Shown in pieces: positions 10,865-59,100 of a stretch of DNA of 64,000 nucleotides (position 1 is the stretch's first letter; every line of letters begins with the position of its first letter). Source of the stretch: Leidyana gryllorum EB-2025a (taxonomy: Eukaryota; Protista; Apicomplexa); contig JBLWGC010000043.1 in assembly GCA_048772705.1 (NCBI GenBank), positions 124,001 through 188,000 of the forward strand, written 5' to 3'. Below the pieces are notes generated by a model. The model did no database searches. It was not told where the DNA came from and saw only the letters and a program-made list of their open reading frames with translations. Both the position numbers and the translations under genes were made by a program.

Positions 10865-10908
10865 AAATGATAGCATGATGAGTTTGTCGGCGGTTTCGAT
10901 TCCGACCG

Positions 10909-11129: not shown

Positions 11130-11263
11130 GCCTCCCGGTCTTGCAAACCGCTGAGCACAGTCGCGAGAGTGGTCATACTATGCTGAGAATCAACAAAAAT
11201 GCGACGGGCCTGCACAACAAAATGGAAGGACCTTTGGGGTTGGAGGCCGGCGTGTTCAGAGCG

Positions 11264-11335
11264 GCCGAGATAGTCTAGTGGTTAGTATTTCCGCCTGTCA
11301 CGCGGAAGACCCGGGTTCGATTCCCGGTCTCGGAA
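11264..11335 (+). tRNA. tRNA-Asp(GTC)
   Basis: TCCGC CTGTCAC GCGGA, CCGGG TTCGATT CCCGG. Confidence 0.82.
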
Positions 11336-11390
11336 CACAGTTGATTTCGCTTAAGATTCTCCCCTTTGGTTCCCGCTGAAAGTTGCGAGC

Positions 11391-11463
11391 TACAGCCACC
11401 GATGATTGAACTCGGGACCTTCTGCGTGTGAAGCAGACGTCGTGACCACTAGACCATGACTGC
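11391..11463 (-). tRNA. tRNA-Val(CAC), slightly degenerate
   Basis: TTCACAC loop; GTTCAATC; T-stem mismatch. Confidence 0.7.
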
Positions 11464-11580
11464 ACGGAGCTTGCGGACTGGGAAACACGGCGTGTGTCTC
11501 TGGAAACACGTAACCTGATGACCTACTTGAGGGAGCGCTAGTCCGATGGCTCTTCCAACTCTTTTGGGAAGGACTGAATG

Positions 11581-11652
11581 GGTTGCGTGGTGTAGTGGTT
11601 AGCACTGGAGACTTTGAATCTCCCGACCTGGGTTCGATTACCGGCGCTACCT
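11581..11652 (+). tRNA. tRNA-Gln(TTG), slightly degenerate
   Basis: GGAGA CTTTGAA TCTCC arm; TGGTGTAGTGG A-box. Confidence 0.75.
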
Positions 11653-11833
11653 CGAAACTAGTGCTCACTACTTTGTGAAACCTGGCCAATTCTCTTGGTC
11701 TGTGGGACCTTCCGTGCGACCATCCTCTGGTGGTCACGGCGTCTGCTTCACATGCAGAAGCTCCCGACGTCAATCCTCGGTGGCTGTGGCTCGCAACTCC
11801 GCGAGAACCCAATCTTAAGCGAAACCAACTGTG

Positions 11834-11905
11834 CTCCGAGACCGGGAATCGAACCCGGGTCTTCCGCGTGACAGACGGAAATACTCACCACTTTACTATC
11901 TCCGA
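11834..11905 (-). tRNA. tRNA-Asp(GTC), slightly degenerate
   Basis: Paralog of 11264. Confidence 0.7.
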
Positions 11906-12001
11906 CGCTCGCAAACACGCCGGCCTTCAGCCTCAGACGTTTTACCAGTTTCGAGGTTCCACGTACACGAAACGCGTGGAGCGGCGAGCCAACAACACTC
12001 C

Positions 12002-12081
12002 GGCAACATGGCCGGGTGGTCTGAAGCGCTGTGTTCATGCCGCAGTTCTAAATCGCGTGGGCTCTAATCTCACGCTTGTCA
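12002..12081 (+). pseudogene. tRNA-Leu pseudogene (loop reads CAT)
   Basis: Decayed paralog of 10446; B-box lost. Confidence 0.6.
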
Positions 12082-12153
12082 TGCATACTATGTCAAAAAC
12101 CACGGAATGCTACGACGTCTGCACAGCGGGCGACTAGCTCAACGCTGGATTGT

Positions 12154-12224
12154 GCATCTGTGGTCTAGTGGTAGAATGTCTCGTTGCCACCGAGACGACC
12201 CAGGTTCGATTCCCGACAGACGCA
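12154..12224 (+). tRNA. tRNA-Gly(GCC)
   Basis: TCTCG TTGCCAC CGAGA; GTTCGATTC; stem mismatches. Confidence 0.72.
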
Positions 12225-12368
12225 GGAGGCACGCCTCAAACCGCCGTGCCAGATTAACAGAGACGCTCACAAGCTTGGTCGGCACGAGGCCGGGGCATTC
12301 TGACACTTGATGTAACAACCCCCTGACATAGAATCGAATGTGAGTTACGCGGTGGCACGGCGGTGATC

Positions 12369-12442
12369 GCTCCCCTAGCTCAGCTGGTTAGAGCATCGGC
12401 CTTATGTGCCGAAGGTCGAGGGTTCGATCCCCCCGGGGAGCC
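12369..12442 (+). tRNA. tRNA-Ile(TAT), intronless
   Basis: GCTCCCC/GGGGAGC acceptor, TCGGC CTTATGT GCCGA. Confidence 0.85.
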
Positions 12443-13018
12443 AATCCACCCAATGACAGCCGAACGCGACCGCCGAGTACTCCAGCATTTTGACACCTAT
12501 GAGTGCCCTAGCCGGGCAGGCCGACCAGGAGGCTGTTTGACCTTAAGGTATCATTCTCCCTCGCTTGGAAGAACGTTGCAAGTGGGTGTTGTAGCTCAGT
12601 CGGCAGAGTCTACCCCCTAACCACTCGAGCAAGTTGTCGAACTGGGCATCTTGCGCCCAGTGCCGTCACATACTTTTCAGCAAGCTTGACTCGGACTTCT
12701 CGCGCTGCCCGAACCTGCGGTCTCCCATCAAAAGTCTTGCGCTCTACCGACGGACTTGGGGCGGCAACGAAGCTCGGACTTAGTAACAAATTCCATTCGT
12801 ATTGATCGTTGAATCTTGGACCTTCCTCGGGTACAGGGCGAAGCTGTATCAGAGATGCACTCACTTGGTCACGCCCGGGCTCCAACCACGGACTCAGAAC
12901 TTATTAGGCTCACGCTCTGGCCGCCTGAAATACGCGGCCGCTTCAGAGTTGAGGTGAACAGTCACTAGCCGAAGGAGCCGACTGATGTGTTCAGCAAAGC
13001 CTTATGATTGGTACTTAG

Positions 13019-18072: not shown

Positions 18073-18385
18073 TGTAACACACGGTTCCCGAACCCCCTCT
18101 GGAGCCCTTGTTGGACCGGCCTACACTACTCCGTCCGGACGAAGGCTACTACGCCAAAGGCGGATAGATTGACGGCGTTTGGTCGGAACCAATGCACCAA
18201 CGTGTCTATGTTTCCGTCTCGTGCCGGCCGGCACACGGGAGACACAGACACAGATCTAGATCAGGATAGATCACTTGACTTACCTTTTTGTGTGCCCGCC
18301 GATTGACTGTGAACCTACCGATTGTGACGTTACACAACGGACGGGAAGTAACCCCCCCCAACGGTGGACCCGCCGCCGGGTTACA
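18073..18385 (+). mobile_element. Solo LTR inserted in RT
   Basis: TGTAAC...GTTACA, TSD tcgca. Confidence 0.9.
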
Positions 18386-24425: not shown

Positions 24426-24638
24426 TGTGATGGCGGCGACTTTCCAAGTCCCGGAGTTGCATTTCGGTAAGTTAGTGGTAAGTTTCGGTAAGTCTGAGTG
24501 CGCACACGTGTGTGTCCGCGTCTCCTATTTTTGTTGTATTCATGTCATGTAATTAAACTTATGCTTAAATCTACTCTAACACTGATCTAACTAACTGTCG
24601 CTTCGGGGGAAGGCGTGAGTGGTGATGTCTCCGTTACA
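24426..24638 (-). mobile_element. LTR with unmatched flanks
   Basis: TGTAACGG...CCATCACA termini on the minus strand. Confidence 0.7.
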
Positions 24639-24660
24639 AGTGTCATTTAAGTACCTATGA

Positions 24661-25090
24661 AGTAGCAAACATGTGGCAAACAAGTGTGAAACAACTCGCA
24701 AACAAGTGTCAAGCATGTGGCAAACATGTCACAAACAGGTGCCAAACGAGTGCCAAACAAGTGGCAAACGAGCGTCAAACAAGCGTCAAACAAGTGTTGT
24801 GGCGAGCAACAAGTATCAAAGATGTCGCAAACATATCGCAAACAAGTGTCAAACGAGTGTCAAACAAGTGTGAAACATGTGGCAAACAAGTAGCAAACAA
24901 GTGGCAAACATGTGTGTAACACGTGGCAAACAAGTAGCAAACAAGTAGCAAAGAAGTATGAAAGATGTGGCAAAGAAGTGGCAAGCAAGTGTAAAGCATG
25001 TGGCACAAGCAAGCAAGTAGGAAACAAGTGTGAAACAGGTAGCAAACAAGTATCAAACATGTCGCAAACAAGTCTCGAACATGTTGCAAA
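24661..25090 (+). repeat. Degenerate 11-bp minisatellite (approx. CAAACAAGTGK)
   Basis: Roughly 39 units in phase; inverted array at 44053-44400. Confidence 0.9.
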
Positions 25091-25132
25091 GGGGTATTGA
25101 AGGCGCTGCAAAGAGATGTGTAACACAAGTAC

Positions 25133-28100
25133 ATCTGGTACAAGTTGCACACTGGTGACGAACTTTGCTTTTTTGAAAAATTTGAAACGGGTTAAGGATG
25201 ACGACATGAAAAATTCCGATGAATTTGTAACGAGATAAGGATGACGACATCAAAAAAATGTAATAAATTCCGCTTAGAGACACCCAATAACCTCAGTAGA
25301 CAAGAAAGACGGTAGGGGAGACTGAGAATGACTCAATTAGATGTTAGCTGGGGCGTCACTGGATGCTGGTTGGGGCAGGCAGCGAATGGGGGTCAGTTGG
25401 TTGGGATAAAAACTGCACAACGGGGAGGTGAGGCTCTGGTCGCAAAGTGGCGAAGCTCCTTGGGGGCTTTCTGGGATGTGTGGGGATGAGTTGCGGGAAC
25501 TTACTTGGTGTGGGAACGTGCCAGACCAGTCTGAGTGGCACGAGGTCACGTCTTGGGAACATCTGCGGGGAAGAAAGCGAGCGCGAGCGAGAAGAGGGCT
25601 TTTTGGATCTGAGAACAAAAATAACAGTACAAGTCCCACGTCTCGCACACCAAATCTTGGGAAAGGTGGCTCGTTTGGGCTGCTATCTGTTGCTTGCGAG
25701 CCGCACGAGAGCTAAATTAAGGAGTCTGACGACCCTTGCATCTCGATGGGAGGCTAGTTTGCTGTAGCGAACGAGCCAATTGAAGTTTGGGAAGTCTCAT
25801 TTTTGCAAAAATCAGGCCTTCTCGTGTCTCAGAGAGCTCGAGAGAGTCGCCTATCTCCTATTCTGGCGGTGAGATTTCGCCTAAAATCTGGCTGCCAACT
25901 AATCAGGCCACTACTATTCCTACGGTAAGCGAGAGAGCTAGTCTAGAGCTTCTAATCAAATTCCTATTTCATTAAAAGTCGTTTCTGGTACCCCCTAAGA
26001 ACCCCCAAAAAACCTACGGTAATGGTCGGGCACACCCTTGCGGGTTTCGCCGACCTGCACAACCTGCACAACTCTTACCTGGCTCGTCCACTCATGCAGT
26101 GGCGGGTGATTAAGTGTATCCTTACAATCTGGTACAAGTTGCACACTGGTGACGAACTCTGCTTTTTTGAAAAATTTGGTAAGGGGTTAAGGATGACGAC
26201 ATGAAAAATTCCGATGAATTAGTAACGGGTTAAGGATGACGACATGAAAAATTCCGATGAATTTGTAACGAGATAAGGATGACGACATCAAAAAACACCG
26301 ATAAACTTGTAACGAGATAAGGGTGACGACATCAAAAAAATGTAATAAATTTCGCTTAGAGCCACCCAATAACCTCAGTAGACGAGAAAGACGGTAGGGG
26401 AGACTGAGAATGATAGGGGAGACTGAGAATGACTCAATGAGATGTTAGCTGGGGCGTCACTGGATGCTGGTTGGGGCAGGTAGCGAATGGGGGTCAGTTG
26501 GCTGGGATAAAAAGTGCACAACGGGGAGGTGAGGCTCTGGTCGCAAAGTGGCGAAGCTCCTTGGGGGCTTTCTGGGATGTGTGGGGATGAGTTGCGGGAA
26601 CTTACTTGGTGTGGGAACGTGCCAGACCAGTCTGAGTGGCACGAGGTCACGTCTTGGGAACATCTGCGGGGAAGAAAGCGAGCGCGAGCGAGAAGAGGGC
26701 TTTTTGGATCTGAGAACAAAAATAACAGTACAAGTCCCACGTCTCGCACACCAAATCTTGGGAAAGGTGGCTCGTTTGGGCTGCTATCTGTTGCTTGCGA
26801 GCCGCACGAGAGCTAAATTAAGGAGTCTGACGACCCTTGCATCTCGATGGGAGGCTAGTTTGCTGTAGCGAACGAGCCAATTGAAGTTTGGGAAGTCTCA
26901 TTTTTGCAAAAATCAGGCCTTCTCGTGTCTCAGAGAGCTCGAGAGAGTCGCCTATCTCCTATTCTGGCGGTGAGATTTCGCCTAAAATCTGGCTGCCAAC
27001 TAATCAGGCCACTACTATTCCTACGGTAAGCGAGAGAGCTAGTCTAGAGCTTCTAATCAAATTCCTATTTCATTAAAAGTCGTTTCTGGTACCCCCTAAG
27101 AACCCCCAAAAAACCTACGGTAATGGTCGGGCACACCCTTGCGGGTTTCGCCGACCTGCACAACCTGCACAACTCTTACCTGGCTCGTCCACTCATGCAG
27201 TGGCGGGTGATTAAGTGTATCCTTACAATCTGGTACAAGTTGCACACTGGTGACGAACTCTGCTTTTTTGAAAAATTTGGTAAGGGGTTAAGGATGACGA
27301 CATGAAAAATTCCGATGAATTAGTAACGGGTTAAGGATGACGACATGAAAAATTCCGATGAATTTGTAACGAGATAAGGATGACGACATCAAAAAACACC
27401 GATAAACTTGTAACGAGATAAGGGTGACGACATCAAAAAAATGTAATAAATTTCGCTTAGAGCCACCCAATAACCTCAGTAGACGAGAAAGACGGTAGGG
27501 GAGACTGAGAATGATAGGGGAGACTGAGAATGACTCAATGAGATGTTAGCTGGGGCGTCACTGGATGCTGGTTGGGGCAGGTAGCGAATGGGGGTCAGTT
27601 GGCTGGGATAAAAAGTGCACAACGGGGAGGTGAGGCTCTGGTCGCAAAGTGGCGAAGCTCCTTGGGGGCTTTCTGGGATGTGTGGGGATGAGTTGCGGGA
27701 ACTTACTTGGTGTGGGAACGTGCCAGACCAGTCTGAGTGGCACGAGGTCACGTCTTGGGAACATCTGCGGGGAAGAAAGCGAGCGCGAGCGAGAAGAGGG
27801 CTTTTTGGATCTGAGAACAAAAATAACAGTACAAGTCCCACGTCTCGCACACCAAATCTTGGGAAAGGTGGCTCGTTTGGGCTGCTATCTGTTGCTTGCG
27901 AGCCGCACGAGAGCTAAATTAAGGAGTCTGACGACCCTTGCATCTCGATGGGAGGCTAGTTTGCTGTAGCGAACGAGCCAATTGAAGTTTGGGAAGTCTC
28001 ATTTTTGCAAAAATCAGGCCTTCTCGTGTCTCAGAGAGCTCGAGAGAGTCGCCTATCTCCTATTCTGGCGGTGAGATTTCGCCTAAAATCTGGCTGCCAA

Positions 28101-28265
28101 CTAATCAGGCCACTACTATTCCTACGGTAAGCGAGAGAGCTAGTCTAGAGCTTCTAATCAAATTCCTATTTCATTAAAAGTCGTTTCTGGTACCCCCTAA
28201 GAACCCCCAAAAAACCTATGGTAATGGTCGGGCACACCCTTGCGGGTTTCGCCGACCTGCACAAC
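25133..28265 (+). repeat. Tandem repeat, 1101-bp period, about 3 units
   Basis: Units start at 25133, 26127, 27228; ORF track recurs at +1101; internal 43-44 bp subrepeats. Confidence 0.95.
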
Positions 28266-28696
28266 AGGGCACCTACCTGTGGCTGATAAAATGGAGAGGT
28301 TACCCGGACTCGGAGAACACCTGGGAACCGTTGTCCGTAATCCGAGAAGGCGACGCGGTGGACCTCGTACTGAGGGAGTATAATGCGAGACCGAGCACTA
28401 AGGTACCCTACACCGCGGAACAACTCGAAGCACGAGACTTAGATCTCGGGCCGGGAGGAGTGTAAGGGGTTACACAATTATCAGCGGCCGGCCAGAGCCG
28501 GTCCGCCATTTGTCTGTGTCTCGGTGCCCGGCCGGCACCGGCACGAGACGGAGACGGGATCAGACAGACACGCGTGTGCTTACGTTTTTGAGTTACTTGA
28601 CAACGGAGATGAACGATCAACCAGGATTAGTCCTACGAAATGGAAAGCAGATTAGCCTAGTAGATCCAGCTACAGACTTACCCCCACCGGGTTATA
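28266..28696 (+). mobile_element. Gypsy 3' end: chromodomain, PPT, LTR (28461-28696)
   Basis: YLWLIKWRGYPDSENTWEP; GGGAGGAG then TGTAAGGGG...GGTTATA; homolog at 35211-35558. Confidence 0.82.
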
Positions 28697-28794
28697 AGTA
28701 CAGATATAGGCGCACAGACAAAAACACACACTCAGACGGGACGACACGACGGACTTACGGAACCGTCGTATCCCTACCGTTAACGCTAATTACA

Positions 28795-29448
28795 CTGCAC
28801 AACGGGGAGGTGAGGCTCTGGTCGCAAAGTGGCGAAGCTCCTTGGGGGCTTTCTGGGATGTGTGGGGATGAGTTGTGGGAACTTACTTGGTGTGGGAACG
28901 TGCCAGACCAGTCTGAGTGGCACGAGGTCACGTCTTGGGAACATCTGGGGGGGGAAGAAAGCGAGCGCGAGCGAGAAGAGGGCTTTTTGGATCTGAGAAC
29001 AAAAATAACAGTCCAAGTCCCACGTCTCGCACACCAAATCTTGGGAAAAGTGGCTCGTTTGGGCTGCTATCTGTTGCTTGCGAGCCGCACGAGAGCTAAA
29101 TTAAGGAGTCTGACGACCCTTACATCTCGATGGGAGGCTAGTTTGCTGTAGCGAACGAGCCAATTGAAGTTTGGGAAGTCTCATTTTTGCAAAAATCAGG
29201 CCTTCTCGTGTCTCAGAGAGCTCGAGAGAGTCGCCTATCTCCTATTCTAGCGGTGAGATTTCGCCTAAAATCTGGCTGCTAACTAATCAGGCCACTACTA
29301 TTCCTAAGGTAAGCGAGAGAGCTAGTCTAGAGCTCCTAATCAAATTCCTATTTCACTAAAAGTCGTTTCTGGTACCCCCTAAGAACCCCCAAAAAACCTA
29401 CGGTAATGGTCGGGCTCACCCTTGCGGGTTTCGCCGACCTGCACAACC
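28795..29448 (+). repeat. Partial fourth copy of the 1101-bp unit
   Basis: Aligns to the 3' ~650 bp of the unit with scattered changes. Confidence 0.9.
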
Positions 29449-34876: not shown

Positions 34877-35558
34877 TCCGTGTTGACTGCGTTCGCCCAC
34901 GACGACGCTCCCCCCCTGAAGGTCCCACAGGCCACCGCTGTCCAATGCCTGACTGGGAGGCCTGCGTTCCTGAAACACTTCTCGAGTGTGTCGAGGTGAA
35001 CAAGTGGTTCTGAATTGCCATCATAGGGCCCCGCCACCTGAAGGGTCGTGCGTATCCATCCCATAAGACGTAAGCCTGTCTCCGTCGGCTCCAGTGGTTC
35101 ACTAGCCAGGTCGGTTTGCTTGTGAGTGTTCTGCGGCCTGGCGCCTTCGTCCAAATCCGTTGCCGTTTCTGGTTCCTTGCCAAGTGCTGGTTAGGACGCA
35201 CTGCTACCAGTATAACCCCGTGGGGTAAGTCTGTTGCTGGATCTACTGGGCGAATCTGCTTTCCATTTCGAAGGAGGACATCCCGTCCGGGGTCGATTAG
35301 TAAGCGACTGTCCCGGAGAGTGGCCATGCCTATGAGTGTGCGTTGCTGCGGCTGGGCGACGCAGTAGAAGCTCGTTGGGATGGTGACCCGGCTAGGGTGA
35401 CGTCCACAGCCGATGCTGATCCCAACCCCAAAGGTAAGCACACGCGTGTCTGTCTGATCCCGTCTCCGTCTTGTGCCTGGTGCCGACCGGGCACGGAGAC
35501 ACAGACAAATGACGGACCGGCGGGGGCCGGCCGCTGATAATTGTGTAAACCCCTTACA
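34877..35558 (-). mobile_element. Gypsy 5' end: LTR (35211-35558), PBS (35199-35209), gag start
   Basis: PBS TGGTAGCAGTG; gag-like VACGTFRGGASSW. Confidence 0.8.
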
Positions 35559-49224: not shown

Positions 49225-49695
49225 TTGGCCCTGAGAAGACACTCGGACGACTACGGTCAAGTTTCAACTGGCGCGGGATTGCAGCGGACGTAGCCCACTT
49301 CTGCAAGAATTGTCGAGAATGCCAACTAGCGAAGCACACAACCCAGAAACAAGCAGGCCTTTTGCACCCAATAGAGAACCCCCCTATTCCCATGGCAGCA
49401 CATCGGAATAGATTTCTTAGAAATGCCGACGGACTCTGCTTCACGACTGAACTACATCATGGTTGTTGTGGACCTAGCAGGCAGGCGCATTAGACAACTA
49501 CCACCCAGCAGGGGTTTCCATGACTTCGAAATCAGAGTCACCCCAGGACCACCCATATGCACACCGCCCTGCCACCTCAGAGAGAAAGAAACCCAAGAAC
49601 TCACCAAACAAATAGATGAACTACTGAGGGCAGGGAAGATTCGCCGATCCAAATCATCATGGGGAGCACCATGCTTCATGGTTCCTGTTGTGGTG

Positions 49696-49768
49696 TACCA
49701 GTTAGTGCAATGGGAAGTGTCTTGTGCTCGCAACCTGGAGGTCGCAGGATCGAATCCACGGCCCTGCA
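49696..49768 (+). promoter_or_regulatory. tRNA-derived unit 1 (initiator-Met-like), putative Pol III type-2 promoter
   Basis: A-box TAGTGCAATGG 49703, B-box GGATCGAATCC 49747. Confidence 0.75.
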
Positions 49769-49820
49769 CTTCGCCCTTGGCTAGCCACCTCGACCGGCAC
49801 ATGGCTGCCCTTAGTATTGT

Positions 49821-49892
49821 GATCCAGTAGTGCAGTGGTAACTACTCGGACTTGGGACCCGCAGGTCGGCGGATCGAATCCCACCTCGGACA
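49821..49892 (+). promoter_or_regulatory. tRNA-derived unit 2, putative Pol III type-2 promoter
   Basis: A-box TAGTGCAGTGG 49828, B-box GGATCGAATCC 49871. Confidence 0.75.
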
Positions 49893-50035
49893 ACTGTGCC
49901 AAGACCCCCAGGTGACGGGTGAGGGCAGGTCGAGGATGGAGGACGGGTGGGGGAGCCCCCAGGAGGCCCCACAGCGTCGTACACGCACGTCTAAGCTGCA
50001 CACTGGTCTGCAGTGCCACGACATGTTCGGCGACT

Positions 50036-50108
50036 GCGCCAATAGCACAATGGTAATGACTACGGACTTATGTTCTGAAGGTCGGTGGTTCGAGTCTCCC
50101 CGCGGACA
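50036..50108 (+). promoter_or_regulatory. tRNA-derived unit 3 (Ile-TAT-like), putative Pol III type-2 promoter
   Basis: A-box TAGCACAATGG 50043, B-box GGTTCGAGTC 50087; CTTATGT..GAAGGTCG shared with the Ile gene at 12369. Confidence 0.75.
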
Positions 50109-50327
50109 AGCCTGACTCCACGGCATTGTCAACGGGACTGGCTGCTTAAGGTAAGTCTTGTCCATACGTGTGCAGGTGAAGGCTGTACACGCGCGCGCCA
50201 AGACATTTGAGGCAAGACCTTAGCTGTAGCACATAGGTAGCGTTAGGTCCAACTTAGATGCTTTTTAGAAAAGGAAAAAAGGGGGGAACGAACTCGACAG
50301 TCGGCACTCACCCTGGAGCACAACAAG

Positions 50328-50346
50328 TGGTGGACGACCTGGGTAT
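50328..50346 (+). other. Primer-binding site complementary to tRNA-Ala
   Basis: TGGTGGACGACCTGGGTAT = anti-CCA plus the 3' end of the Ala genes at 9342 and 7646. Confidence 0.92.
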
Positions 50347-50355
50347 TCATCCAAC

Positions 50356-51354
50356 ATGGCCGACGAAGAATCAAGTAGCGCACCGTCCGAACCGCCCTTC
50401 GACCCAGCCCTGATGGGGCAGATGATGGCGGCCTTCTTAGCGCAGATGAGGGAGACGGGCGTCACACCGGGCTTCCAAGTCGAGCGGGCGCTCAACTGGG
50501 CGGACTTACCCGTGTTCCCGGGGAGGTGCGATCGGGTGGACGCATGGTTCTCCACTCTGGAAACCAAACTCAAAGCGAACCGGCTAAGTGAGGACAAGTG
50601 GGCTAGCAAGTTCTTGGAGTGTCCACGAGTCGGTGACGAGTTGAAGCGGCGAGTCAGCAACATCGAAGAAAATCCGCTAACCTACGCTACCATCCGACGC
50701 GTCTGTCTGGAAGTGTATGGGCCAGCGAATCCCGTGGGTTTTTTCCGGAGCAAAATCTGGCGGGTGAGAGGAAGGACCCGGGAGGAAGTGTTGCCCAAGC
50801 TGGAAGACGCCTTGGCGTTGCACAATCGAGCAGCGAGGGACGAAGACAAACCCGAATGGGAGGACTGGGACCTCATCTACCCGTTTGTGGAAGCTTTCCC
50901 GGCTGAAGTCGGCGAGAAGCTGCGGGCTGAGATACGCTCTGTTATGCGCCTGCCAAACCCCTTTCGAGAATTGGTTGCCCGAGCCCCGAGCCGCGATGAG
51001 GAGGCGACTGAGGAGAACATACCCTTGGTGGCTGCGATAGCCGAGAGCGAAAGGCCTCAAAAGAGACGGCGCTCCACCGAACATGGACTAGTCGCTGTGC
51101 TAAGCAAGCTAGAATCCACCATGGCCACCCTGCGGCCCCAAAAAATGAGTCGGGTCCCTTGCGCTGGCTGTGGCGGAAACTGCAGTGACCGAGCACAATG
51201 CCCCGCCCAAGGCCGGACCTGCCATCAGTGCGGAAAGGCAAACCACTTTGCGAGAGTGTGTCGACGCCCTGGCTCCCGCCCGGCGCCTGAAACCGCCCGC
51301 CGGAGTCCGGACCACCCTTTTCGCCGGCGCTCCGATATGTCTCCGCAGTCGTGA
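50356..51354 (+). CDS. gag: Gag polyprotein, 332 aa
   Basis: ATG just after the PBS; CHQCGKANHFARVC knuckle. Confidence 0.92.
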   Translation: MADEESSSAPSEPPFDPALMGQMMAAFLAQMRETGVTPGFQVERALNWADLPVFPGRCDRVDAWFSTLETKLKANRLSEDKWASKFLECPRVGDELKRRVSNIEENPLTYATIRRVCLEVYGPANPVGFFRSKIWRVRGRTREEVLPKLEDALALHNRAARDEDKPEWEDWDLIYPFVEAFPAEVGEKLRAEIRSVMRLPNPFRELVARAPSRDEEATEENIPLVAAIAESERPQKRRRSTEHGLVAVLSKLESTMATLRPQKMSRVPCAGCGGNCSDRAQCPAQGRTCHQCGKANHFARVCRRPGSRPAPETARRSPDHPFRRRSDMSPQS

Positions 51355-54300
51355 CCACCACGGTTGTCCGGCCAGCTGTCGTCGCCGTCCGTCATGGTCA
51401 CACCTGGTTGGAGGCACTGGTGGACACGGGGGCCCAAGTGTCTGTTGTGCGGCATGCCGTGTTGTCGACCTTGAAGCCAGCACCGGTACCTGTCTCACGA
51501 GAGACCACGTTACGAACGGCCGGTAAAAGTGGACTGTCGGTCGTAGGGGTAGTAGACCTATGGCTAACTCTCGGCCGGAGTACCCGAAAAGGACGGTTCC
51601 ACATCGCAAAAGACTTAAGTCACCAAGTCATCCTAGGGCTGGGCACACTACAGGCCTGGAATGTCACTCCGATGCCCAAAAAAGAAGCTGTGACGGTGGA
51701 CGGTGAAGTACTCCCCTTCCTCCCCGTCCAAACGACTCCCATAATCGCGACTGTGGCCACAAAAGAGTTGAAACTCACCTTCGGCACCCAACTGACTCCT
51801 ACACAACGAGCTAGTGTCGAGGCCCTATTGCGGGAGGACATGTTCGCGTCCGACGCTCGCCCCTATGGCTGTGCCGCCGGATATGAGCATGCTATTGACA
51901 CGGGTGATGCGCGGCCACTCGCTACGGCAGTACGCAGGGTGAGCCCAGCGGAACGCGATATTATCGAGAAGGAAGTAAATCGCATGCTCGCCTGCGGTGC
52001 AGTGGTACCCTCCAACTCCCCTTGGGCGTCTGGCATCGTGCTGGTGAGGAAAAAGGATGGCAGCACGCGGTTCTGTTGTGACTTCCGGCCGCTAAACAAG
52101 GTCACTAAAAAGGACGTTTACCCGTTACCCAACATTGCCGACCTCTTGGGAGCACTAGCGGGTGCACGGTACTTCACGTCCCTGGATGCTGCCGCCGGTT
52201 ACTGGCAAATCCCCCTCAGAGTGGAAGATCGGCCCAAGACGGCGTTCATCTCCCCGCTAGGCTTGTTTGAGTGGACGGTTATGCCTTTCGGTCTCTGCAA
52301 TGCCCCTGCGACGTATCAGCGGATGATGCACGAAGTGTTAGCCGGACTACTATGGCAGGGATGTTTGGTCTACCTCGATGATATCCTAATCTGGGGTCGG
52401 ACGCTGGAAGAACATAATGAGCGGCTCAAAAAAGTGTTGGAGCGTCTCCACCGCCACGGAATACTGCTCAAACCAGCCAAGTGCACCTTCGCGGAGCCCA
52501 AAACAACTTTCCTCGGCTTCGTGGTGTCGGATAAGGGCATCCACCCGGATGAAAAGAAGCTGGCAAAGGTGCGCCAATTCCCGGTCCCCACCGACCGAAA
52601 CGAGGTACGATCCTTTCTGGGACTCGCGGGGTATTACCGGAGGTTTGTGCGGAACTTCGCTACGCTCGCTAAGCCGCTCAGCGACCTCTTGGCCCAGGAG
52701 ACGCCTTGGAAGTGGACGGAGGTGGAGCAGCAGGCCTTCGAGACCATCCGAGCGAGTGTGGCTGCCGACGCTACCCTCGACCATCCCGACTGGTCCCAGC
52801 CGTTCGTCGTGGACACGGACGCGTCGGACTTTGGCATCGGATGCGTACTGAGCCAGGTGGGAGAAGGCAAGGAAGAGCGGATTGTCATGGTTGAGTCACG
52901 CAAACTCACGGCGGGTGAACAGAAGTGGCACATACGGGAGAAAGAGGCCTTAGCTGTGGTCTGGGCGCTGCAAAAGTTCCGGCCGTACATCCTCGGCAGG
53001 CCGTTCGAAGTTCGGACCGATCACTCCAGTCTGCAGTGGCTGTTGGAAGCTACCAGTGGACGCCTGGTACGTTGGGCCCTACTGTTGCAAGAGTACACGC
53101 CATTCGACATCAAGCACCGGAGTGGAAAGCAACACTGCAACGCTGACGCTTTCACACGCATTTCCTACGAGGATGAAGGTATGCCAGACCACGCGTTCGT
53201 CTGTGCTGTGGATTGGCAGGTGCTACCGGACGAAAAAAGACTCAAAGAGGCGCAAGCGACCGATCCCGCGTGTCAGAAGCTGACCCGACTCGGTAAAGCG
53301 GTTCAAAAAAATGGAATCATAGGTCTTAAGGGGTCTCGCGGCTGGAAACCTATCCTACCAGCAGTCCTAGCACCGGAGGTACTCCAAATGTGGCACAAAA
53401 ACCCTTTGGGAGCTCATCTGGGAGCCCGTAAGCTGCTGGGAACGCTTGCGGCCCGCTACGTTATCCCGGCCGGCGCCAGTCTTGCCCGCGCGGTGACTCG
53501 CGGCTGCCTTGCCTGTGCACGGCGCAAGCCGAGTCCGACTCGCTTCGGCCTGTTGGCTTCTTCACCACCCACGAGCCCGTGGCATACTGTGGCGATGGAC
53601 TTCGCGGGGCCTTACGATGTGTCGGATGACGGCAACCGTTACGTGCTCGTGTTCGTTGACCATTTCACCAAGTGGACGGAACTGGTGGCTACGCCTAACC
53701 AGACTGCCTCTACGGTGTTGCGTGCCTTCTATGAACGTATTGTGTGTCGCCACGGCTGCCCTGTCCGGCTGTTGTCCGACAACGGTCCGCAGTTCAGGTC
53801 TGAATTGGTACAGTCTGTCTGCGCCTACTTTGGTATCGCTAAAATATACACGTCTGCGTACTATCCGCAGGGCGATGGGCAAGCTGAACGGTTCATGCGT
53901 ACCCTAAACAACTCTCTTGCCGCGCTGAGTATCCACAGCCCTCGCGAGTGGGACGTATTCTTACCGGGGTTACAGTTCGCATACAACGCGGCACCCCATG
54001 AGGCCATAAAGATGTCTCCGTTCGAGCTGAACACGGGACGTGTCCCTCGCCTGCCCGGGGAGGCGACGTTACCTAACCAAATTCATTCAACACGACATAC
54101 AAACTACATAAAAAAATTACGGAGTGTCGTCAAGAACCACTTACAAAGAGCCACGGAGCGCGCAGAAGCCTATTGGAACACGATGAAGGACGCCTACGAT
54201 GCCCACCACACGGACAAGGAGCTAACTCTAGGCTCTTGGGTGTTAGAGAAGCTCACGGACAAGGAGAGAGCCGAGTATCCGGTGACCAAGCTCGCTCCGC

Positions 54301-54893
54301 GTTGGTCCAGGCCGATGCGAGTCCAAGAACGACTCACTAACGGTGTCACGTACCGTCTGTGTACCGAAGAGGGCCACATAGTCACTTCCCACATTTCCCG
54401 ACTTTTGCCCCTCGATGCCGATTATTGGGAGTTTCAAAAGTGCGAGTACTTTCCAACCAGTACACCTTTTCGCGTTCCGAGTTCAAATGAGAAGACAGTG
54501 GAAACTGAAGAAGACGATGAGCCTATACGTATCACGTGGGGGTGTAGGAATGACATACCTGATTTCGGACCCCAAGTCAACAGGGTGCCACTTCGCCCCG
54601 AACCCGACACGATGTCCGACCCTCCAGCTCAAGCAAGAGGTCCAGGCACCAGGCTCACCTCTTTGACGAGTCGGCAAGCGGATCCGGTACAGTTCTACGA
54701 AGTCAGGAAAATCGTCGCTCGGAAGCGGGAAAATCGAGGGTCTGAGCCCTACTACCGAGTCCGCTGGACGGGATATCCCCCTGAAGAGGACACCTGGGAG
54801 CCACGGTCTCGCCTCTTGGAGGACGTGCCTAGCCTCGTCCGCAGGTTCGACCAGAAGCACCCTCGAGCTAGTGGGACACAAGCTCGCAGGTAG
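51351..54893 (+). CDS. pol: Pol polyprotein (protease, RT, RNase H, integrase, chromodomain), in the -1 frame relative to gag
   Basis: LVDTGA, YLDD, TDASD, H..H..CLAC, MDF/SDNG/AER, YEVRKIV...YRVRWTGYPPEEDTWEP; no stop over 1180 codons. Confidence 0.96.
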   Translation: MTTTVVRPAVVAVRHGHTWLEALVDTGAQVSVVRHAVLSTLKPAPVPVSRETTLRTAGKSGLSVVGVVDLWLTLGRSTRKGRFHIAKDLSHQVILGLGTLQAWNVTPMPKKEAVTVDGEVLPFLPVQTTPIIATVATKELKLTFGTQLTPTQRASVEALLREDMFASDARPYGCAAGYEHAIDTGDARPLATAVRRVSPAERDIIEKEVNRMLACGAVVPSNSPWASGIVLVRKKDGSTRFCCDFRPLNKVTKKDVYPLPNIADLLGALAGARYFTSLDAAAGYWQIPLRVEDRPKTAFISPLGLFEWTVMPFGLCNAPATYQRMMHEVLAGLLWQGCLVYLDDILIWGRTLEEHNERLKKVLERLHRHGILLKPAKCTFAEPKTTFLGFVVSDKGIHPDEKKLAKVRQFPVPTDRNEVRSFLGLAGYYRRFVRNFATLAKPLSDLLAQETPWKWTEVEQQAFETIRASVAADATLDHPDWSQPFVVDTDASDFGIGCVLSQVGEGKEERIVMVESRKLTAGEQKWHIREKEALAVVWALQKFRPYILGRPFEVRTDHSSLQWLLEATSGRLVRWALLLQEYTPFDIKHRSGKQHCNADAFTRISYEDEGMPDHAFVCAVDWQVLPDEKRLKEAQATDPACQKLTRLGKAVQKNGIIGLKGSRGWKPILPAVLAPEVLQMWHKNPLGAHLGARKLLGTLAARYVIPAGASLARAVTRGCLACARRKPSPTRFGLLASSPPTSPWHTVAMDFAGPYDVSDDGNRYVLVFVDHFTKWTELVATPNQTASTVLRAFYERIVCRHGCPVRLLSDNGPQFRSELVQSVCAYFGIAKIYTSAYYPQGDGQAERFMRTLNNSLAALSIHSPREWDVFLPGLQFAYNAAPHEAIKMSPFELNTGRVPRLPGEATLPNQIHSTRHTNYIKKLRSVVKNHLQRATERAEAYWNTMKDAYDAHHTDKELTLGSWVLEKLTDKERAEYPVTKLAPRWSRPMRVQERLTNGVTYRLCTEEGHIVTSHISRLLPLDADYWEFQKCEYFPTSTPFRVPSSNEKTVETEEDDEPIRITWGCRNDIPDFGPQVNRVPLRPEPDTMSDPPAQARGPGTRLTSLTSRQADPVQFYEVRKIVARKRENRGSEPYYRVRWTGYPPEEDTWEPRSRLLEDVPSLVRRFDQKHPRASGTQARR

Positions 54894-54897
54894 GGGG

Positions 54898-55276
54898 TGT
54901 AACCTTCTTGAGGGTTATACGCGGTTGGGTGGACCTCGCGTCCATTGCGGAGTGTCATAGGTACGTGATCTATCGGTTCCATCGGTCTAGAGGTGAGTGG
55001 CAAGGAACAGCAAAAAGGTAAGTCACACTAGGGTAAGTTCTCGATCTAGAATCTATCTTGCTGTCTGTCTTGTCTGTGTCTCCGTATGTGTGCCGGCCGG
55101 CTGGCCGGCACGAGACGGAGACACAGACACGTGGACATATTGGCTGCGGCCAAATGTCGTCATACTATCCGCCTTTGGCGTAGCAGACGGCCTCCGAGGA
55201 CCGTCCCTTCCTCCGGACTGAGTTGTGTCGGTCGGTCCAGTAAAGGGGTTCGGGGTTCGGGTAACGTCGTGTTACA
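54898..55276 (-). mobile_element. Solo LTR inserted into the PPT
   Basis: TGTAAC...GTTACA, TSD ggggg. Confidence 0.9.
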
Positions 55277-55286
55277 GGGGGAGTGT

Positions 55287-55925
55287 TGTTGTGGTGTACC
55301 AGTTAGTGCAATGGGAAGTGTCTTGTGCTCGCAACCTGGAGGTCGCAGGATCGAATCCACGGCCCTGCACTTCGCCCTTGGCTAGCCACCTCGACCGGCA
55401 CATAGCTGCCCTTAGTATTGTGATCCAGTAGTGCAGTGGTAACTACTCGGACTTGGGACCCGCAGGTCGGCGGATCGAATCCCACCTCGGACAACTGTGC
55501 CAAGACCCCCAGGTGACGGGTGAGGGCAGGTCGAGGATGGAGGACGGGTGGGGGAGCCCCCAGAAGGCCCCACAGTGTCGTACACGCAACGTCTAAGCTG
55601 CACACTGGTCTGCAGTGCCACGTCATGTTTTGCGACTGCGCCAATAGCACAATGGTAATGACTACGGACTTATGTTCTGAAGGTCGGTGGTTCGAGTCTC
55701 CCCTCGGACAAGCCTGACTCTACGGCATTGTCAACGGGGCTGGCTACCTACGGTAAGTCTTGTCCATACGTGTGCAGGTGAAGGCTGTACACGCGCGAGC
55801 CAAGACATTTGGGGCAAGACCTTAGCCGTAGCACATAGGTAGCGTTAGGTCCAACTTAGATGCTTTTTAGAAAAGGAAAAAGGGGGAACGAACTCGACAG
55901 TCGGCACTCACCCTGCAGCACAACA
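55287..55925 (+). repeat. 3' LTR with the same three tRNA-derived units (~55297-55369, 55422-55493, 55638-55710)
   Basis: Direct repeat of 49686-50325. Confidence 0.95.
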
Positions 55926-56109: not shown

Positions 56110-59100
56110 TATTTAAGGCCAAGTGGGCCCTGGCAGCAGGCAGCAGGCGGTGGAGATCCGCCATCACCACAGTGACCGGATGCGGAACTTATGAAGAGCT
56201 AGTGATGGAGGTAGCGAACTCACAATTTACCACGATAATTATTTAGCGGAGCTGGAACGACAAATCCTGTACCCTGAAGAACAGAAGACAGTGCAGGACG
56301 CTGTCGATCTCATAGTACTCAAGGCAGAAAGAGCAGTTAGGTTAGCGCGCAGTAGAGGATATGAAGAGATAGAAGCGGCACTGGGGGAGCGAAGGATCGC
56401 TCAAGGGTTAAAAATGGCGTTACCCAAAACTGTGGCAGCCCGGGTCATGATGGAAGCAGAATGGAAGCTGAGCAATGGGCTAGTGGACCGAGCACTGAGA
56501 ACTGAACAGATGAGGTGGGAGTTGATGATTGCGGAGCAATCGTTGTTTCTAGCTAGTGAGAGCACGCACTCAGACAACAGGACGGAGACCAGGGAACTGC
56601 CACGGATGCCTAGGCCAGCACTTCCGGAGAGATTGCCCGCACGCAGATTCTGTTTGCCGCAGATGTGGTAAGAAGGGCCACCTTGCAAGAGCATGCCTGG
56701 TGACAGTGGTGCCTGACTGTATGGGCGGAAAGCAGGTGGGGTAACCATCACCGTGGAGGGTGATGGCACCAAGGCCACCAGTTTGCAGAAGGCACAGCGA
56801 CTCATTCAGCGGAACATTCCCCCTCAGGCACAGCAGATGGTTGATATAAATACGGTGGAAGAACTAAGAGGAGGTCAGCCAGCAGGAGTGAGTGCCAACG
56901 TGCGATGGAAGAGGGCGAGCTGAGTGCTGACGAATACACCGCAGCCGCGATGGATGTTCAAGGTTTTAGGAGTCTGTGATGGGCAAGACGTGCAGATGCT
57001 GATGGATACTGGAGCAGCCAGATCCATGTGTGGACGAGCAGTAGCGAAGAAATTGAAATTGGAAGATACTGCTCAAGTATTGAACTTCGTAGGCCTAGGA
57101 CGAAGGACTGCCAGGCAGCAGAAACCCGTTGAGATGCAAATAGGAGATCGAGTGATTCAGGTGGAGTTTTACCTATTGGATGAGGAGGAGTTCCCTGCAC
57201 TATTAGGATATGCGGAACTAACGAAGCTAAGAGCTCTGATCGACACTGTGAACTTTGTGTTGAAGGATGTGGACTCACAGCGTATAATAGCTCATGCAGT
57301 AGAAGAGCAGCTAGTGGCTGTGATGGAGCCGGAAATGAACACGATTGAGGAAGGTTCTGAATTACAGCTCAAATGGCTGAAAGCAGTTGAACACCTACGA
57401 GATGAAAGCAAGGAGGAGATCTCCACAATCTTCATGGAATATCGAAAGTGTTGGATGGACCCAAAAGCTAGGTGGCATCCGGAATGCAGCAGCTCGACTG
57501 GAAGTTCAGGGGCGCCCCGTCAAGGAGCCGATGCGGAGGTTGTCGCCAGTGCTGAAGGAGGTTCAAGAGAAGGAAATGGATAAGCTACTGAAGGAAAGGG
57601 CAATCCGCCCGAGTAAGTCAGCTTGGGGAAGTGCACCAGTCTTCATCAGGAAGAAGGACGGATCGTGGCGGCTATGCATTGACTACCGCCCGCTCAACAG
57701 GCTGATGAAAGCCGATTCCTACCCTCTGCCACTGATCTGGGACCAGCTTCAGACGATAGCCGGCAAGACGAGGTATACAAGTTTAGATTGCTACTCAGGT
57801 TTCTGGCACATGCCACTAGAGGAGAGTTCGAAGGAGTACACTGCTTTCGTCACACATAGAGGTACATTCGAGTTCAATGTGCTACCGTTTGGGATCAAGA
57901 CAAGCGGGTCAGAGTTTCAAAGGGTCATGGATGATACATTCGGAGATCTATACAACGCAGGCGTCTTTTGTTATGTTGACGACATCGTGATAGCGGCACA
58001 GACTAAGGAAGATCACGACCGAGTACTGAAAGAAGTCCTAAAACGAGCCTGTGAAAGAGGTCTATCGCTGAAAATGGAGAAGTCGGAGACTGATGTTGTG
58101 CTCCAGGGTGAGTGCCGACTGTCGAGTTCGTTCCCCTTTTTTCCTTTTCTAAAAAGCATCTAAGTTGGACCTAACGCTACCTATGTGCTACGGCTAAGGT
58201 CTTGCCTCAAATGTCTTAGCGCCTGCGTGTACAGCCTTCACCTGCACACGTATGGACAAGACTTACCTTAAGTAGCCAGTCCAGTTGACAATGCCGTGGA
58301 GTCAGGCTTGTCCGCGGGGAGACTCGAACCACCGACCTTCAGAACATAAGTCCGTAGTCATTACCATTGTGCTATTGGCGCAGTCGCCGAACATGACGTG
58401 GCACTGCAGACCAGTGTGCAGCTTAGACGTTGCGTGTACGACGCTGTGGGGCCTTCCGGGGGCTCCCCCACCCGTCCTCCATGCTCGACCTGCCCTCACC
58501 CGTCACCTGGGGTCTTGGCACAGTTGTCCGAGGTGGGATTCGATCCGCCGACCTGCGGGTCCCAAGTCCGAGTAGTTACCACTGCACTACTGGATCACAA
58601 TACTAAGGGCAGCCATGTGCCGGTCGAGGTGGCTAGCCAAGGGCGAAGTGCAGGGCCGTGGATTCGATCCTGCGACCTCCAGGTTGCGAGCACAAGACAC
58701 TTCCCATTGCACTAACTGATACACCACAACAACTGACAAGGAGGAGATTGAAGTTTTAGGGCACAAAGTGGGGAGTGCAGGAATTGCCCCGGCACCGAAG
58801 AAAGTGCAAGGGATCATCCAGGCCAGTCCACCGCAGGATAAGAAAGTACTGAAGTCATTTTTAGGCACTGTGAGCTATCTCAGGCGATTCATCCCAAAAC
58901 TAGCAGCCATAGTGGAGCCTCCGACACGATTGATGAAGAAGGGGAGTGCATGGGAATGGGGATAGGAGCAAGATGAGGCATTCAAGTTTCTCAAGCAAGA
59001 ATTGGTTCGAGCTGTGATTCTGCGCGCTCCAACAGGAACGGGCTCCTTCAAGATGATGACAGACGCTTCAGATAGAGGCATTGGAGCGGTACTACTGCAG

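Follow-up and report, generated by a model that had tools for sequence, protein, structure and literature searches.

Degenerate tRNA-gene-derived units with retained A and B boxes in the LTRs of an autonomous chromovirus from Leidyana gryllorum

Like the element described here, Helenus TRIMs (TRIMp3) have LTRs with a tRNA-like sequence in which the A and B boxes are conserved; they possess 4-5 bp target duplications, a PBS, and a PPT (Kojima 2024, PMC10886601). They are, however, shorter than 1 kb, noncoding, and dependent, with one tRNA-like sequence per LTR (PMC10886601), whereas the present element encodes gag, pol, and a chromodomain and has three units per LTR. Cassandra and Ajax TRIMs likewise contain a Pol III gene-derived promoter in the LTR; theirs is a 5S type-1 promoter in a non-autonomous element (PMC10886601), in contrast to the tRNA type-2 boxes of the present, autonomous one. 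The describer of Helenus has argued that a Pol II promoter is obligatory for autonomous partners and that these should not have LTRs of this kind (PMC10886601). The preliminary description of the present locus knew of no autonomous element of such a design, and none turned up in the literature consulted, with the nearest—the Helenus TRIMs—being non-autonomous. Pol III-promoter LTRs appear to be known so far only from miniature noncoding elements.

Anatomy of the element and its copies

The DNA analyzed (the window) comprises 64,000 nt of Leidyana gryllorum EB-2025a (GCA_048772705.1, JBLWGC010000043.1:124,001-188,000, forward strand). Window positions 49686-55925 are occupied by an autonomous Ty3/Gypsy chromovirus of 6.2 kb, primed by tRNA-Ala. 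Its features, together with those of a nearby solo LTR, are as follows.

49686-50325, + strand: 5′ LTR, 640 nt, direct repeat with 55287-55925, termini TGTTGTG...CACAACA
49696-49769, + strand: unit 1, initiator tRNA-Met-like relic (A box 49703-49713, B box 49747-49757)
49821-49894, + strand: unit 2, hybrid-looking tRNA-like relic (A box 49828-49838, B box 49871-49881)
50036-50109, + strand: unit 3, tRNA-Ile(TAT)-like relic (A box 50043-50053, B box 50087-50097)
50262-50289, + strand: T5 run followed by a purine tract, TTTTTAG...GGGGGGAAC, candidate 3′-end/terminator region (R/U5 boundary)
50328-50344, + strand: PBS, complementary to the 3′ end of tRNA-Ala(AGC) plus CCA
50356-51354, + strand: gag ORF, 332 aa, with a CX2CX4HX4C zinc knuckle (CCHC)
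51351-54893, + strand: pol ORF, 1180 aa, in the -1 frame relative to gag, encoding protease, RT, RNase H, integrase, and chromodomain
55050-55150, + strand: palindromic hairpin module in the 3′ untranslated region, common to other element families
55276-55283, + strand: polypurine tract AGGGGGAG, ending 3 nt ahead of the 3′ LTR
55287-55925, + strand: 3′ LTR, 639 nt, with three units as in the 5′ LTR (A boxes at 55304, 55429, and 55645; B boxes at 55348, 55472, and 55689)
58094-58731, - strand: solo LTR of the same family, with the 5-bp duplication ACTGA at 58089-58093 and 58732-58736

The two LTRs of the element are 97% identical to each other and have TG...CA ends with short terminal inverted repeats, and most other copies in the genome match the 5′ LTR at 99-100% identity. 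The gag and pol ORFs are both intact, in agreement with the preliminary description of a coding-intact Gypsy element. A Pfam search with the gag ORF returned no match; the pol product matched PF13975, PF00078, PF17917, PF17921, PF00665, and PF00385, in the order PR-RT-RNase H-IN-chromodomain, with the Chromo domain spanning residues 1116-1169. Comparison of the PBS with the 24 tRNAs of the window gave tRNA-Ala(AGC) as the best match, with 18 of 19 end positions, versus at most 13 for every other tRNA. At the other end of the element, the GGGGGAG and TGTT junction between the PPT and the LTR is also present in the relatives L052, L053, L054, and L055.

The LTR boundaries previously given (49686, 55287, and a solo copy from 58094) hold, except that the solo LTR ends at 58731 and not at 58733. 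The first run of four or more Ts in the 5′ LTR had been placed at ~50262, and it does begin at 50262, being the sole such run within this LTR. The T5/purine motif is retained in an old relic 82% identical to the LTR and, among 56 fetched loci, was found only in the present LTR family and the distant relative L052. It had further been stated that these LTRs lack a promoter-like module found in most other LTRs here. The LTR is indeed without the palindromic module attributed to the neighboring LTRs, but the element does have this module, at 55050-55150, where it gives weak miRNA-like hairpin matches; segments of it are 70-89% identical in other families (88-89% at C6) and 98% identical at C26. 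The copies at C6 and C26 may be accompanied by sister LTRs.

The assembly contains one full-length copy and eight independent solo LTRs. The 5-bp duplications are perfect in all eight solo LTRs, and that at 58094-58731 sits inside the RT gene of another element. The full-length copy has no target-site duplication (flanking 5-mers GTTCC versus GCTGT), and its flanks come from two different elements. Five of the nine independent insertions are in tRNA arrays, one insertion is inside a tRNA gene, and the distance to the nearest tRNA is variable, at ~77 to 690 nt. LTR fragments have already been shuffled into a tRNA array. The assembly yielded no miniature derivative having LTRs of this family, the other copies all being solo LTRs. 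The tRNA load of the genome is high, with 11,591 RF00005 candidates and 799 calls in the 233 kb sampled.

Ancestry, fold, and boxes of the tRNA-like units

All three units lie on the same strand in each LTR, with A-to-B spacings of 44, 43, and 44 nt in units 1, 2, and 3, respectively, and AGGTCG ahead of every B box, just as the preliminary description had reported. The A boxes TAGTGCAATGG, TAGTGCAGTGG, and TAGCACAATGG begin at LTR nt 18, 143, and 358, and the B boxes—GGATCGAATC in two units and GGTTCGAGTC in the other—at LTR nt 62, 186, and 402. With a fixed 33-nt gap, the box consensus has six matches in the window, all in these LTRs, versus 0.00 expected (100 shuffles). A looser A+B regex gave, outside the tRNA array (window 1-12.5 kb), matches confined to the three LTRs.

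The units are derived from tRNA genes. Their best-match scores are 21, 18, and 28, with shuffle maxima of 4-5.5: unit 1 is closest to initiator-type tRNA-Met (21 versus a shuffle maximum of 5) and unit 3 to Ile-TAT (28 versus 5.5), with its anticodon loop CTTATGT retained, both being the assignments made earlier. Unit 2 is intermediate, with a 5′ part and B box like those of unit 1, and an anticodon arm and 3′ trailer like those of unit 3. A 5′ flanking word is common to units 1 and 2, and a 3′ word to units 2 and 3, which fits the internal duplication already suggested on the basis of shared flanking words. Two further candidates were rejected, namely a fourth decayed unit at LTR 236-278, which did not score above shuffles (12 versus 13.1), and a minus-strand Ile-like fragment at LTR 595-622, which was marginal (16.5 versus a shuffle maximum of 16).

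Searches of the genome with each unit recovered copies of the LTR, the C194 relic, and a single rearranged fragment of an LTR, and nothing else; for a tRNA-derived SINE, these searches yielded no free-standing copies outside LTR-derived sequence. The tRNA array was also rejected as the source of unit 1, because the array pieces in question (C43:119395-119598 and 122887-123090) together form an LTR fragment, inverted and split, in which LTR spacer is present as well. These pieces are 96% identical to the active LTR, closer than the C194 relic, with which they have one ancestral base in common.

The fold of a tRNA has been lost. Neither ARAGORN nor Rfam (E up to 10) called a tRNA at the units, and only 12, 12, and 11 of 21 stem pairs are formed in units 1, 2, and 3 (35/63 in total), versus a median of 20 in real tRNAs. 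The positions conserved in at least 90% of the genome's tRNAs are, in contrast, all retained (33/33; 11/11 per unit), so the earlier statement that the promoter boxes persist and the tRNA structure does not is borne out. With a genome-specific covariance model, the units score 16-19 bits with structure versus 13-21 bits for sequence only (unit 1, 17.1 versus 20.7; unit 2, 19.0 versus 13.0), and real array tRNAs score 50-80 versus 33-51 bits with the same models, matching the expectation of sequence similarity with a poor structure score. For the units, structure adds nothing to the score. They do not have the paired acceptor, D, anticodon, and T stems of a functional tRNA gene. Furthermore, when compared with 542 unique tRNAs, every non-box 14-mer of the units differs from all of them by 3-4 mismatches, indicating units that are old and diverged rather than fresh chimeras; a recent chimera of extant tRNAs was, on this ground, rejected as the purely mutational source of the pattern of kept boxes and broken stems.

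Retention of the boxes and its explanations

We propose, with middling confidence, that the TFIIIC/Pol III boxes are kept in the LTR as a cis-regulatory platform of the autonomous chromovirus, whose genomic RNA would be made by Pol II. The 5′ two-thirds of the LTR, presumably U3, hold the three degenerate tRNA-gene-derived modules, each retaining a putative type-2 Pol III internal control region—that is, an A and a B box at tRNA spacing—and each without the acceptor, D, and T stems that a tRNA transcript would need. The boxes would be selected as DNA sites for TFIIIC, and then for TFIIIB and Pol III, and the platform may hold the LTR open or insulated within the tRNA arrays and transposon nests at its landing sites. 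The 5.6-kb genomic RNA would be synthesized by Pol II from a start downstream of unit 3, with its end close to the T5/purine motif. Without the acceptor and T-stem helix, the U3 part of this RNA may also escape cleavage by RNase P and RNase Z. A Tau95 (TFIIIC) homologue is encoded in the genome (E = 1.4e-12; prokaryote controls gave no match), and a B-block TFIIIC domain match is marginal, with its model firing in prokaryote controls too. With A and B boxes that match the consensus in a genome encoding TFIIIC, the units are candidate TFIIIC sites by sequence. Promoter boxes retained without the fold suggest that factors for tRNA transcription are borrowed from the cell by the element.

The first alternative, which we regard as rather unlikely, is that the units are neutral passengers: U3 would have taken up tRNA debris from flanking arrays or from particle tRNA cDNA, and the intact boxes would reflect luck, ascertainment, and the youth of the family. 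Capture is easily envisaged in a genome saturated with tRNA sequence (over 10,000 tRNA-like copies), where five of nine independent insertions in arrays provide ample opportunity, and copies that are 97-100% identical leave little time for decay. Nevertheless, the stems of the units are near-random (35/63 pairs) and the conserved positions are not (33/33), and the non-box segments have diverged strongly from every sampled tRNA. In addition, the array fragments matching unit 1 come from the LTR, not vice versa.

Retention of the boxes is also unusual by the standard of decayed tRNA copies in the same genome. Among 192 uncalled tRNA-profile matches at 10-30 bits, seven (3.6%) have both boxes at tRNA spacing, so array relics of equal score rarely look as the units do. 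At locus L028, a 10-kb array stretch, none of nine low-scoring class-I relics retains both boxes, and among 478 class-I array units positive for the boxes, no more than 3 are down to 12 pairs or fewer. Across 14 LTR copies, 5 variation events were counted in the 225 nt of the units versus 38 in the remaining 415 nt (p = 4.5e-4); lineage-shared variants numbered 2 versus 26 (p = 9e-4), and private variants 3 versus 12, which is not significant. The 3.6% retention in decayed tRNA copies and the lower variation of the units argue for selection on the boxes. The variation test is, however, not significant for LTR 1-275 alone, and units 1 and 2 may vary little partly because the divergent copies have a mosaic or recombinant origin. 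The three units may also be paralogous, in which case box retention in the three is not fully independent. Within the units, 1 change in boxes and 4 in non-box positions are indistinguishable, and a comparison of boxes with stems across copies is without power, given 97-100% identity and 5 changes in all. In the one old relic (82% identical), boxes have changed at ~9/55 positions versus 18% overall (a hand count on the alignment), that is, they have decayed like the rest of the LTR, as a neutral passenger would; the three-unit layout is nonetheless older than this 18%-diverged relic, which speaks against such a passenger. Overall, comparison with the decaying tRNA copies of the genome suggests that retention of the boxes with loss of the fold is selective and not plain decay.

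Relatives of the element bear on neutral capture in both directions. A similar layout is found in the distant relative L052 (metagenome; Pol 44% identical), in which three same-strand A+B units follow the PPT/TGTT junction, together with a T5AG...G5AAC motif; its LTR is deduced from a single end, and the units are weak, two scoring 12.7 and 14.3 bits and the third found by regex only. In L054, an 82% identical sister of L052 from another sample, the unit-1 A box is retained where the flanks differ. Most relatives, on the other hand, are without units (9 of the 12 checked), including the sister of L052 and L056, which has the tRNA-Ala primer site in common. Two metagenome scans with the two-unit box pattern gave no match, and a scan of viral contigs with the Pol alignment found no relatives.

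The second alternative holds that the units are active Pol III genes yielding LTR ncRNAs of ~235-570 nt that end at T5, with the RNA itself, not factor binding, being selected; its extreme form is a genomic RNA made by Pol III. This we judge improbable. The near-consensus boxes at tRNA spacing are compatible with such genes, as is the single conserved T5 run downstream of all three units, which recurs in the relic and in L052, and this mode of action has been proposed for Cassandra and Helenus TRIMs (PMC10886601). Only 3.7% of the genome's tRNA genes have a T4+ run within 15 nt downstream, so Pol III may read far here, and a missing terminator at the units is not special. The sense strand of the element, however, has 7 T4+ runs versus 7.2 expected by composition, including a T6 run at element nt 1054; Pol III-style avoidance of T runs was, therefore, rejected, and this argues against Pol III synthesis of the full-length RNA. 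Moreover, hardly any U3 would remain if a transcript began at unit 1, and the units fold into no stable tRNA-like product.

A third alternative, in which the units would work not as promoter boxes in DNA but within the 3′ part of the genomic RNA (for instance, through tRNA-binding proteins, packaging, or primer placement), is very improbable: the units do lie on the sense strand in the LTR part expected at the RNA's 3′ end, and variation is low across whole units and not in the boxes alone, but there is no conserved pairing, the CM score gains nothing from structure, the conserved part is exactly the Pol III control region and not a fold, and units of the same sense as tRNAs cannot pair with the primer 3′ end.

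Returning to the proposed cis-regulatory platform, a broader version of it is possible, although we advance it tentatively. In this chromovirus lineage of gregarine-like protists, the tRNA-gene Pol III/TFIIIC promoter may be a standing LTR control part, recruited repeatedly or long kept; its members would be the first self-sufficient "p3"-type LTR elements, in which boxes bound by TFIIIC serve the element itself as enhancer or insulator where tRNA arrays crowd the genome, with loss of tRNA structure itself selected for guarding the genomic RNA from tRNA-processing enzymes.

Comparison with known systems

If the proposal is correct, a full retrotransposon can co-opt the TFIIIC/Pol III machinery, probably for chromatin access or insulation rather than RNA synthesis, which would counter the reasoning of the Helenus describer that autonomous elements cannot share the Pol III-promoter LTR design. 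The units may also be viewed as a natural experiment parting the promoter (DNA-level) function of conserved tRNA positions from their fold (RNA-level) function, and the finding is relevant to how the mobile elements of this genome and its extraordinary tRNA arrays influence one another.

The mouse B2 SINE has been described as a chromatin boundary (PMC8136502). Association with Pol III genes is shared by the present element with Ty3 and with Dictyostelium DGLT-A and TRE5-A (PMC6101501, PMC5006619). The present element differs from these three in its variable distance to tRNAs (~77 to 690 nt) and in carrying Pol III boxes of its own. Ty3, DGLT-A, and TRE5-A recognize the Pol III complex on their targets, and the distance at which they insert is fixed. 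In yeasts, tDNA/TFIIIC sites are chromatin barriers. Drosophila gypsy contains the Su(Hw) insulator, an array of sites for a zinc-finger protein, in its 5′ UTR. Gypsy is thus an autonomous Ty3/Gypsy element that carries its own insulator, but not, as in the element described here, Pol III boxes in U3.

Anatomy of the element and its copies

The window contains one full-length LTR retrotransposon, 49686-55925, which is the sole full-length copy in the 15.5-Mb assembly. The features of the element, and of a solo LTR nearby, are as follows.

Both ends of 49686-55925: LTRs of 640 and 639 nt, 97% identical, starting TGTTGTG and ending CACAACA
LTR nt 18, 143, and 358: starts of the A boxes of units 1-3
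LTR nt 62, 186, and 402: starts of the B boxes, with A-to-B spacings of 44, 43, and 44 nt
50328-50344: primer-binding site, 2 nt past the 5′ LTR, complementary to the tRNA-Ala(AGC) 3′ end plus CCA
50356-51354: gag, with a CX2CX4HX4C knuckle
51351-54893: pol, in the -1 frame, with protease, RT, RNase H, integrase, and C-terminal chromodomain
55276-55283: polypurine tract AGGGGGAG, ahead of the 3′ LTR
58094-58731, minus strand: solo LTR, with 5-bp duplication ACTGA

The LTRs, priming sites, gag, and chromodomain-bearing pol therefore identify the element, as read from its sequence, as a coding-intact chromovirus, and the gag and pol domains bear out the preliminary description of an intact Gypsy element. 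Among the 24 tRNAs of the window, tRNA-Ala(AGC) plus CCA was by far the best partner of the primer-binding site. Comparison of the flanks of the full-length copy revealed no target-site duplication, and these flanks belong to two different elements in opposite orientation; the copy probably arose by rearrangement between copies. Solo LTRs make up all 12 of the other full LTR copies; they trace to eight independent insertions, all flanked by perfect 5-bp duplications, and four of these eight were later duplicated along with their surroundings. One tRNA-like gene is interrupted in its anticodon region by a solo LTR with the duplication ACTCT; a later duplication copied this insertion, flanks included, onto another contig (L011, C68:13964-14603, and L012, C187:9365-10004), and three more insertions behaved alike. 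The transposon nest of the window also contains two tandem arrays (24614-25140 and 25209-29250), one with an 11-nt period and one with a 1101-bp unit in 3-4 repeats, 99-100% identical.

tRNA parentage and loss of the fold

Each LTR contains three same-strand units, with AGGTCG preceding the B box in every one. The box consensus proposed in the preliminary description has six matches in the window, all within these LTRs (0.00 expected), and a looser A+B pattern, with the tRNA array at 1-12.5 kb excluded, has no matches beyond the nine units in the three LTRs. Comparison with 542 unique tRNA sequences from 233 kb of the genome's own arrays showed unit 1 to be nearest to initiator-type tRNA-Met and unit 3 to tRNA-Ile(TAT), with an identical anticodon loop, and unit 2 to be hybrid-looking, between the other two; match scores were 18-28, against shuffle maxima of 4-5.5. 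Units 1 and 2 have a 5′ flanking word in common, and units 2 and 3 a 3′ trailer. The original observation, including box spacing, tRNA parentage, and shared flanking words, is thus correct in every part. Minus-strand positions 50280-50307 (LTR nt 595-622), presumably in U5, show marginal similarity to the tRNA-Ile(TAT) variable loop and T arm, with a score of 16.5 where shuffles reach at most 16. Each non-box 14-mer of the units lies 3-4 mismatches from any sampled tRNA, which makes the units old, diverged sequences and not a recent patchwork of extant tRNAs.

Neither ARAGORN nor Rfam (E up to 10) called a tRNA at the units. With a covariance model trained on 20 class-I tRNAs of this genome, the units scored 16-19 bits, and with a sequence-only model from the same alignment 13-21 bits, so structure adds nothing; independent array tRNAs scored 50-80 bits with structure and 33-51 without. 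All 11 positions conserved at ≥90% in an alignment of 440 class-I tRNAs (T8, G10, A14, G18, A21, T33, G53, T55, C56, A58, and C61) are kept in each unit (33/33), whereas of the 21 stem pairs only 12, 12, and 11 remain possible in units 1-3, compared with a class-I median of 20 and about 8 by chance. The expectations of sequence likeness with poor structure scores, and of persisting boxes with mostly failing stems, were accordingly confirmed.

Box retention and candidate functions

The likeliest reading, with about an even chance of being right, is that the A and B boxes are retained as DNA sites for TFIIIC, which would keep the LTR open or insulated within arrays and nests. Pol II transcription would start downstream of unit 3 and end near the T5/purine motif. 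With its acceptor and T stems broken, the U3 portion of the genomic RNA would escape cutting by RNase P and RNase Z. TFIIIC genes of the genome include a clear Tau95 homologue and a marginal B-block domain match.

Appreciably less probable is that the units are neutral passengers. The genome contains about 11,600 tRNA-model candidates (11,591 for RF00005), with arrays holding approximately one tRNA per 290 bp (799 ARAGORN calls in the 233 kb sampled), and its many decaying copies served as an internal control for neutral decay. Both boxes occur at tRNA spacing in 7 of 192 (3.6%) uncalled tRNA-profile matches (10-30 bits, no ARAGORN call), a profile on which the three LTR units score 11-20 bits, and in 0 of 9 low-scoring class-I relics from one 10-kb array stretch; conversely, at most 3 of 478 box-positive class-I array units have ≤12 pairs. 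In array copies, therefore, boxes and stems disappear together; the LTR units—not fully independent observations if paralogues—are missing only the stems. The pattern of variation across the 14 LTR copies likewise points beyond neutral decay: 5 events were found in 225 nt of units versus 38 in the remaining 415 nt (Fisher p = 4.5e-4), counts that are small and in which boxes are inseparable from the remaining unit positions. The deficit concerns variants that either occur in more than one insertion or are confined to the two divergent copies (2 versus 26, p = 9e-4), which arose in replicating lineages, and is not significant for variants private to 99-100% identical copies (3 versus 12); a mosaic history of the divergent copies may lie behind part of its 5′ portion. 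An old copy on contig C194, 82% identical, already holds the three units, so the layout is older than the recent burst, and its boxes decayed at the pace of the rest, as expected of a dead copy.

Active Pol III genes yielding LTR ncRNAs are improbable. A T4+ run lies ≤15 nt downstream of just 3.7% of array tRNA genes, canonical terminators being mostly absent, and terminator-less units are therefore normal for this genome. T4+ runs on the element's sense strand equal the number predicted from composition, making Pol III synthesis of the genomic RNA unlikely under canonical termination. An RNA-level cis element, on units whose structure adds nothing to their scores, is very improbable.

tRNA genes are extremely dense at 1-12500 of the window and in the array loci L026-L047. 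Five of nine independent insertions lie within tRNA arrays, one inside a tRNA gene, and the others in transposon nests; if arrays make up 10-22% of the genome, this is an enrichment, with a binomial P of ~0.001 to 0.03 (hand arithmetic), to which survival bias may contribute. An LTR fragment (nt 14-123, unit 1 plus spacer) occurs in the array, a short distance upstream of the window, as follows.

C43:122887-123090 (L017 1501-1704): array LTR fragment
C43:119395-119598 (L018): array LTR fragment

A break in the unit-1 anticodon stem divides the fragment, whose 5′ part lies inverted ~100 nt downstream, and the fragment was duplicated together with a 3.5-kb array cassette. It came from an LTR, rather than the LTR unit from the array; LTR pieces thus get shuffled into tRNA arrays.

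These LTRs had been described as free of the neighbors' promoter-like module. This holds for the LTR itself, but the element carries the module, which is palindromic, ahead of the polypurine tract, within the 3′ untranslated region. Other control sequences must then serve the LTR, and the units are the obvious candidates. The module, a long GC-rich hairpin with 70-98% identity across otherwise different element families, is better conserved than the pol genes of its carriers.

55050-55150: palindromic module of this element
8090-8175, 18073-18271, 28510-28555, and 35462-35508: other copies in the window
C26:14673-15060; C6:20367-20619 and 25211-25465: copies on other contigs

Homology stops at GTGTTACA, just ahead of the polypurine tract. 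The match to the 98% copy on C26 covers precisely the interval between the pol stop and the LTR junction, yet no match to the LTR of this family was found on that contig.

Relatives and known elements

The nearest Pol proteins, 45-53% identical, come from metagenome or run assemblies, and twelve contigs of such relatives were read. In nine, no tRNA-like unit was found wherever an LTR is visible; these include L053, with a complete 413-nt LTR followed by a primer site, and L056, which has the tRNA-Ala primer site in common with this element. Three contigs contain units. L052 (Pol 44% identical, chromodomain, same GGGGGAG + TGTT junction) has three same-strand A+B-box units, starting at ~25, 225, and 1135 nt of a putative LTR inferred from one end only; a T5AG...G5AAC motif near the end of this LTR is limited, among 56 fetched loci, to L052 and the family described here. 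L054, from another sample (Pol 82% identical to that of L052), carries the unit-1 A box in the corresponding position, with diverged intervening sequence, and stops soon after the junction. L049 has one unit, then a purine-rich tract, ~900 nt past pol. All these units are weak (7-14 bits) and do not align with those of the window's element beyond the boxes. A quick Pol tree requires at least three gains or losses of the trait; repeated gain, or an old origin with losses, would be more in keeping with a useful module than with a chance event.

The closest Pol relative (53%; L023 460-998, an ENA metagenome contig) immediately follows three tRNA or tRNA-like genes, with R1 scores of 44, 32, and 27 bits, and relatives may therefore also inhabit tRNA-rich genomes. 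L056, a Logan run assembly (Pol 50% identical), has a near-identical tRNA-Ala primer-binding site at 69-85, TGGTGGACGACCTGAGT, and its 3′ LTR shows no more than B-box-like remnants in the initial 200 nt. The unit-less LTR of L053 (3921-4060), from the sister family of L052, opens with four TAGATCGG-type words, one of them preceding AAGTCGGTTCAAG; the words could represent a distinct repeated control motif, or else units in an advanced state of decay.

Newly shown here are the array-relic controls, model scores, lone full-length copy without duplication, LTR-to-array fragment, and distant relatives. Unlike Ty3, with its precise spacing to tRNA genes, this family inserts at varying distances from the nearest tRNA, and so lacks such precision. 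A survey of apicomplexan mobile elements reported Gypsy-like elements as the only LTR elements in gregarines, without such a feature (PMC9141347), and, in keeping with the preliminary description, the literature searched yielded no autonomous element of this design. Among known elements, the Helenus TRIMs come closest: their LTRs likewise contain tRNA-like sequence with conserved boxes, and their autonomous partners, it was argued, must use Pol II promoters (PMC10886601). However, Helenus TRIMs are miniature and non-coding (PMC10886601), whereas the present element is a coding-intact chromovirus.
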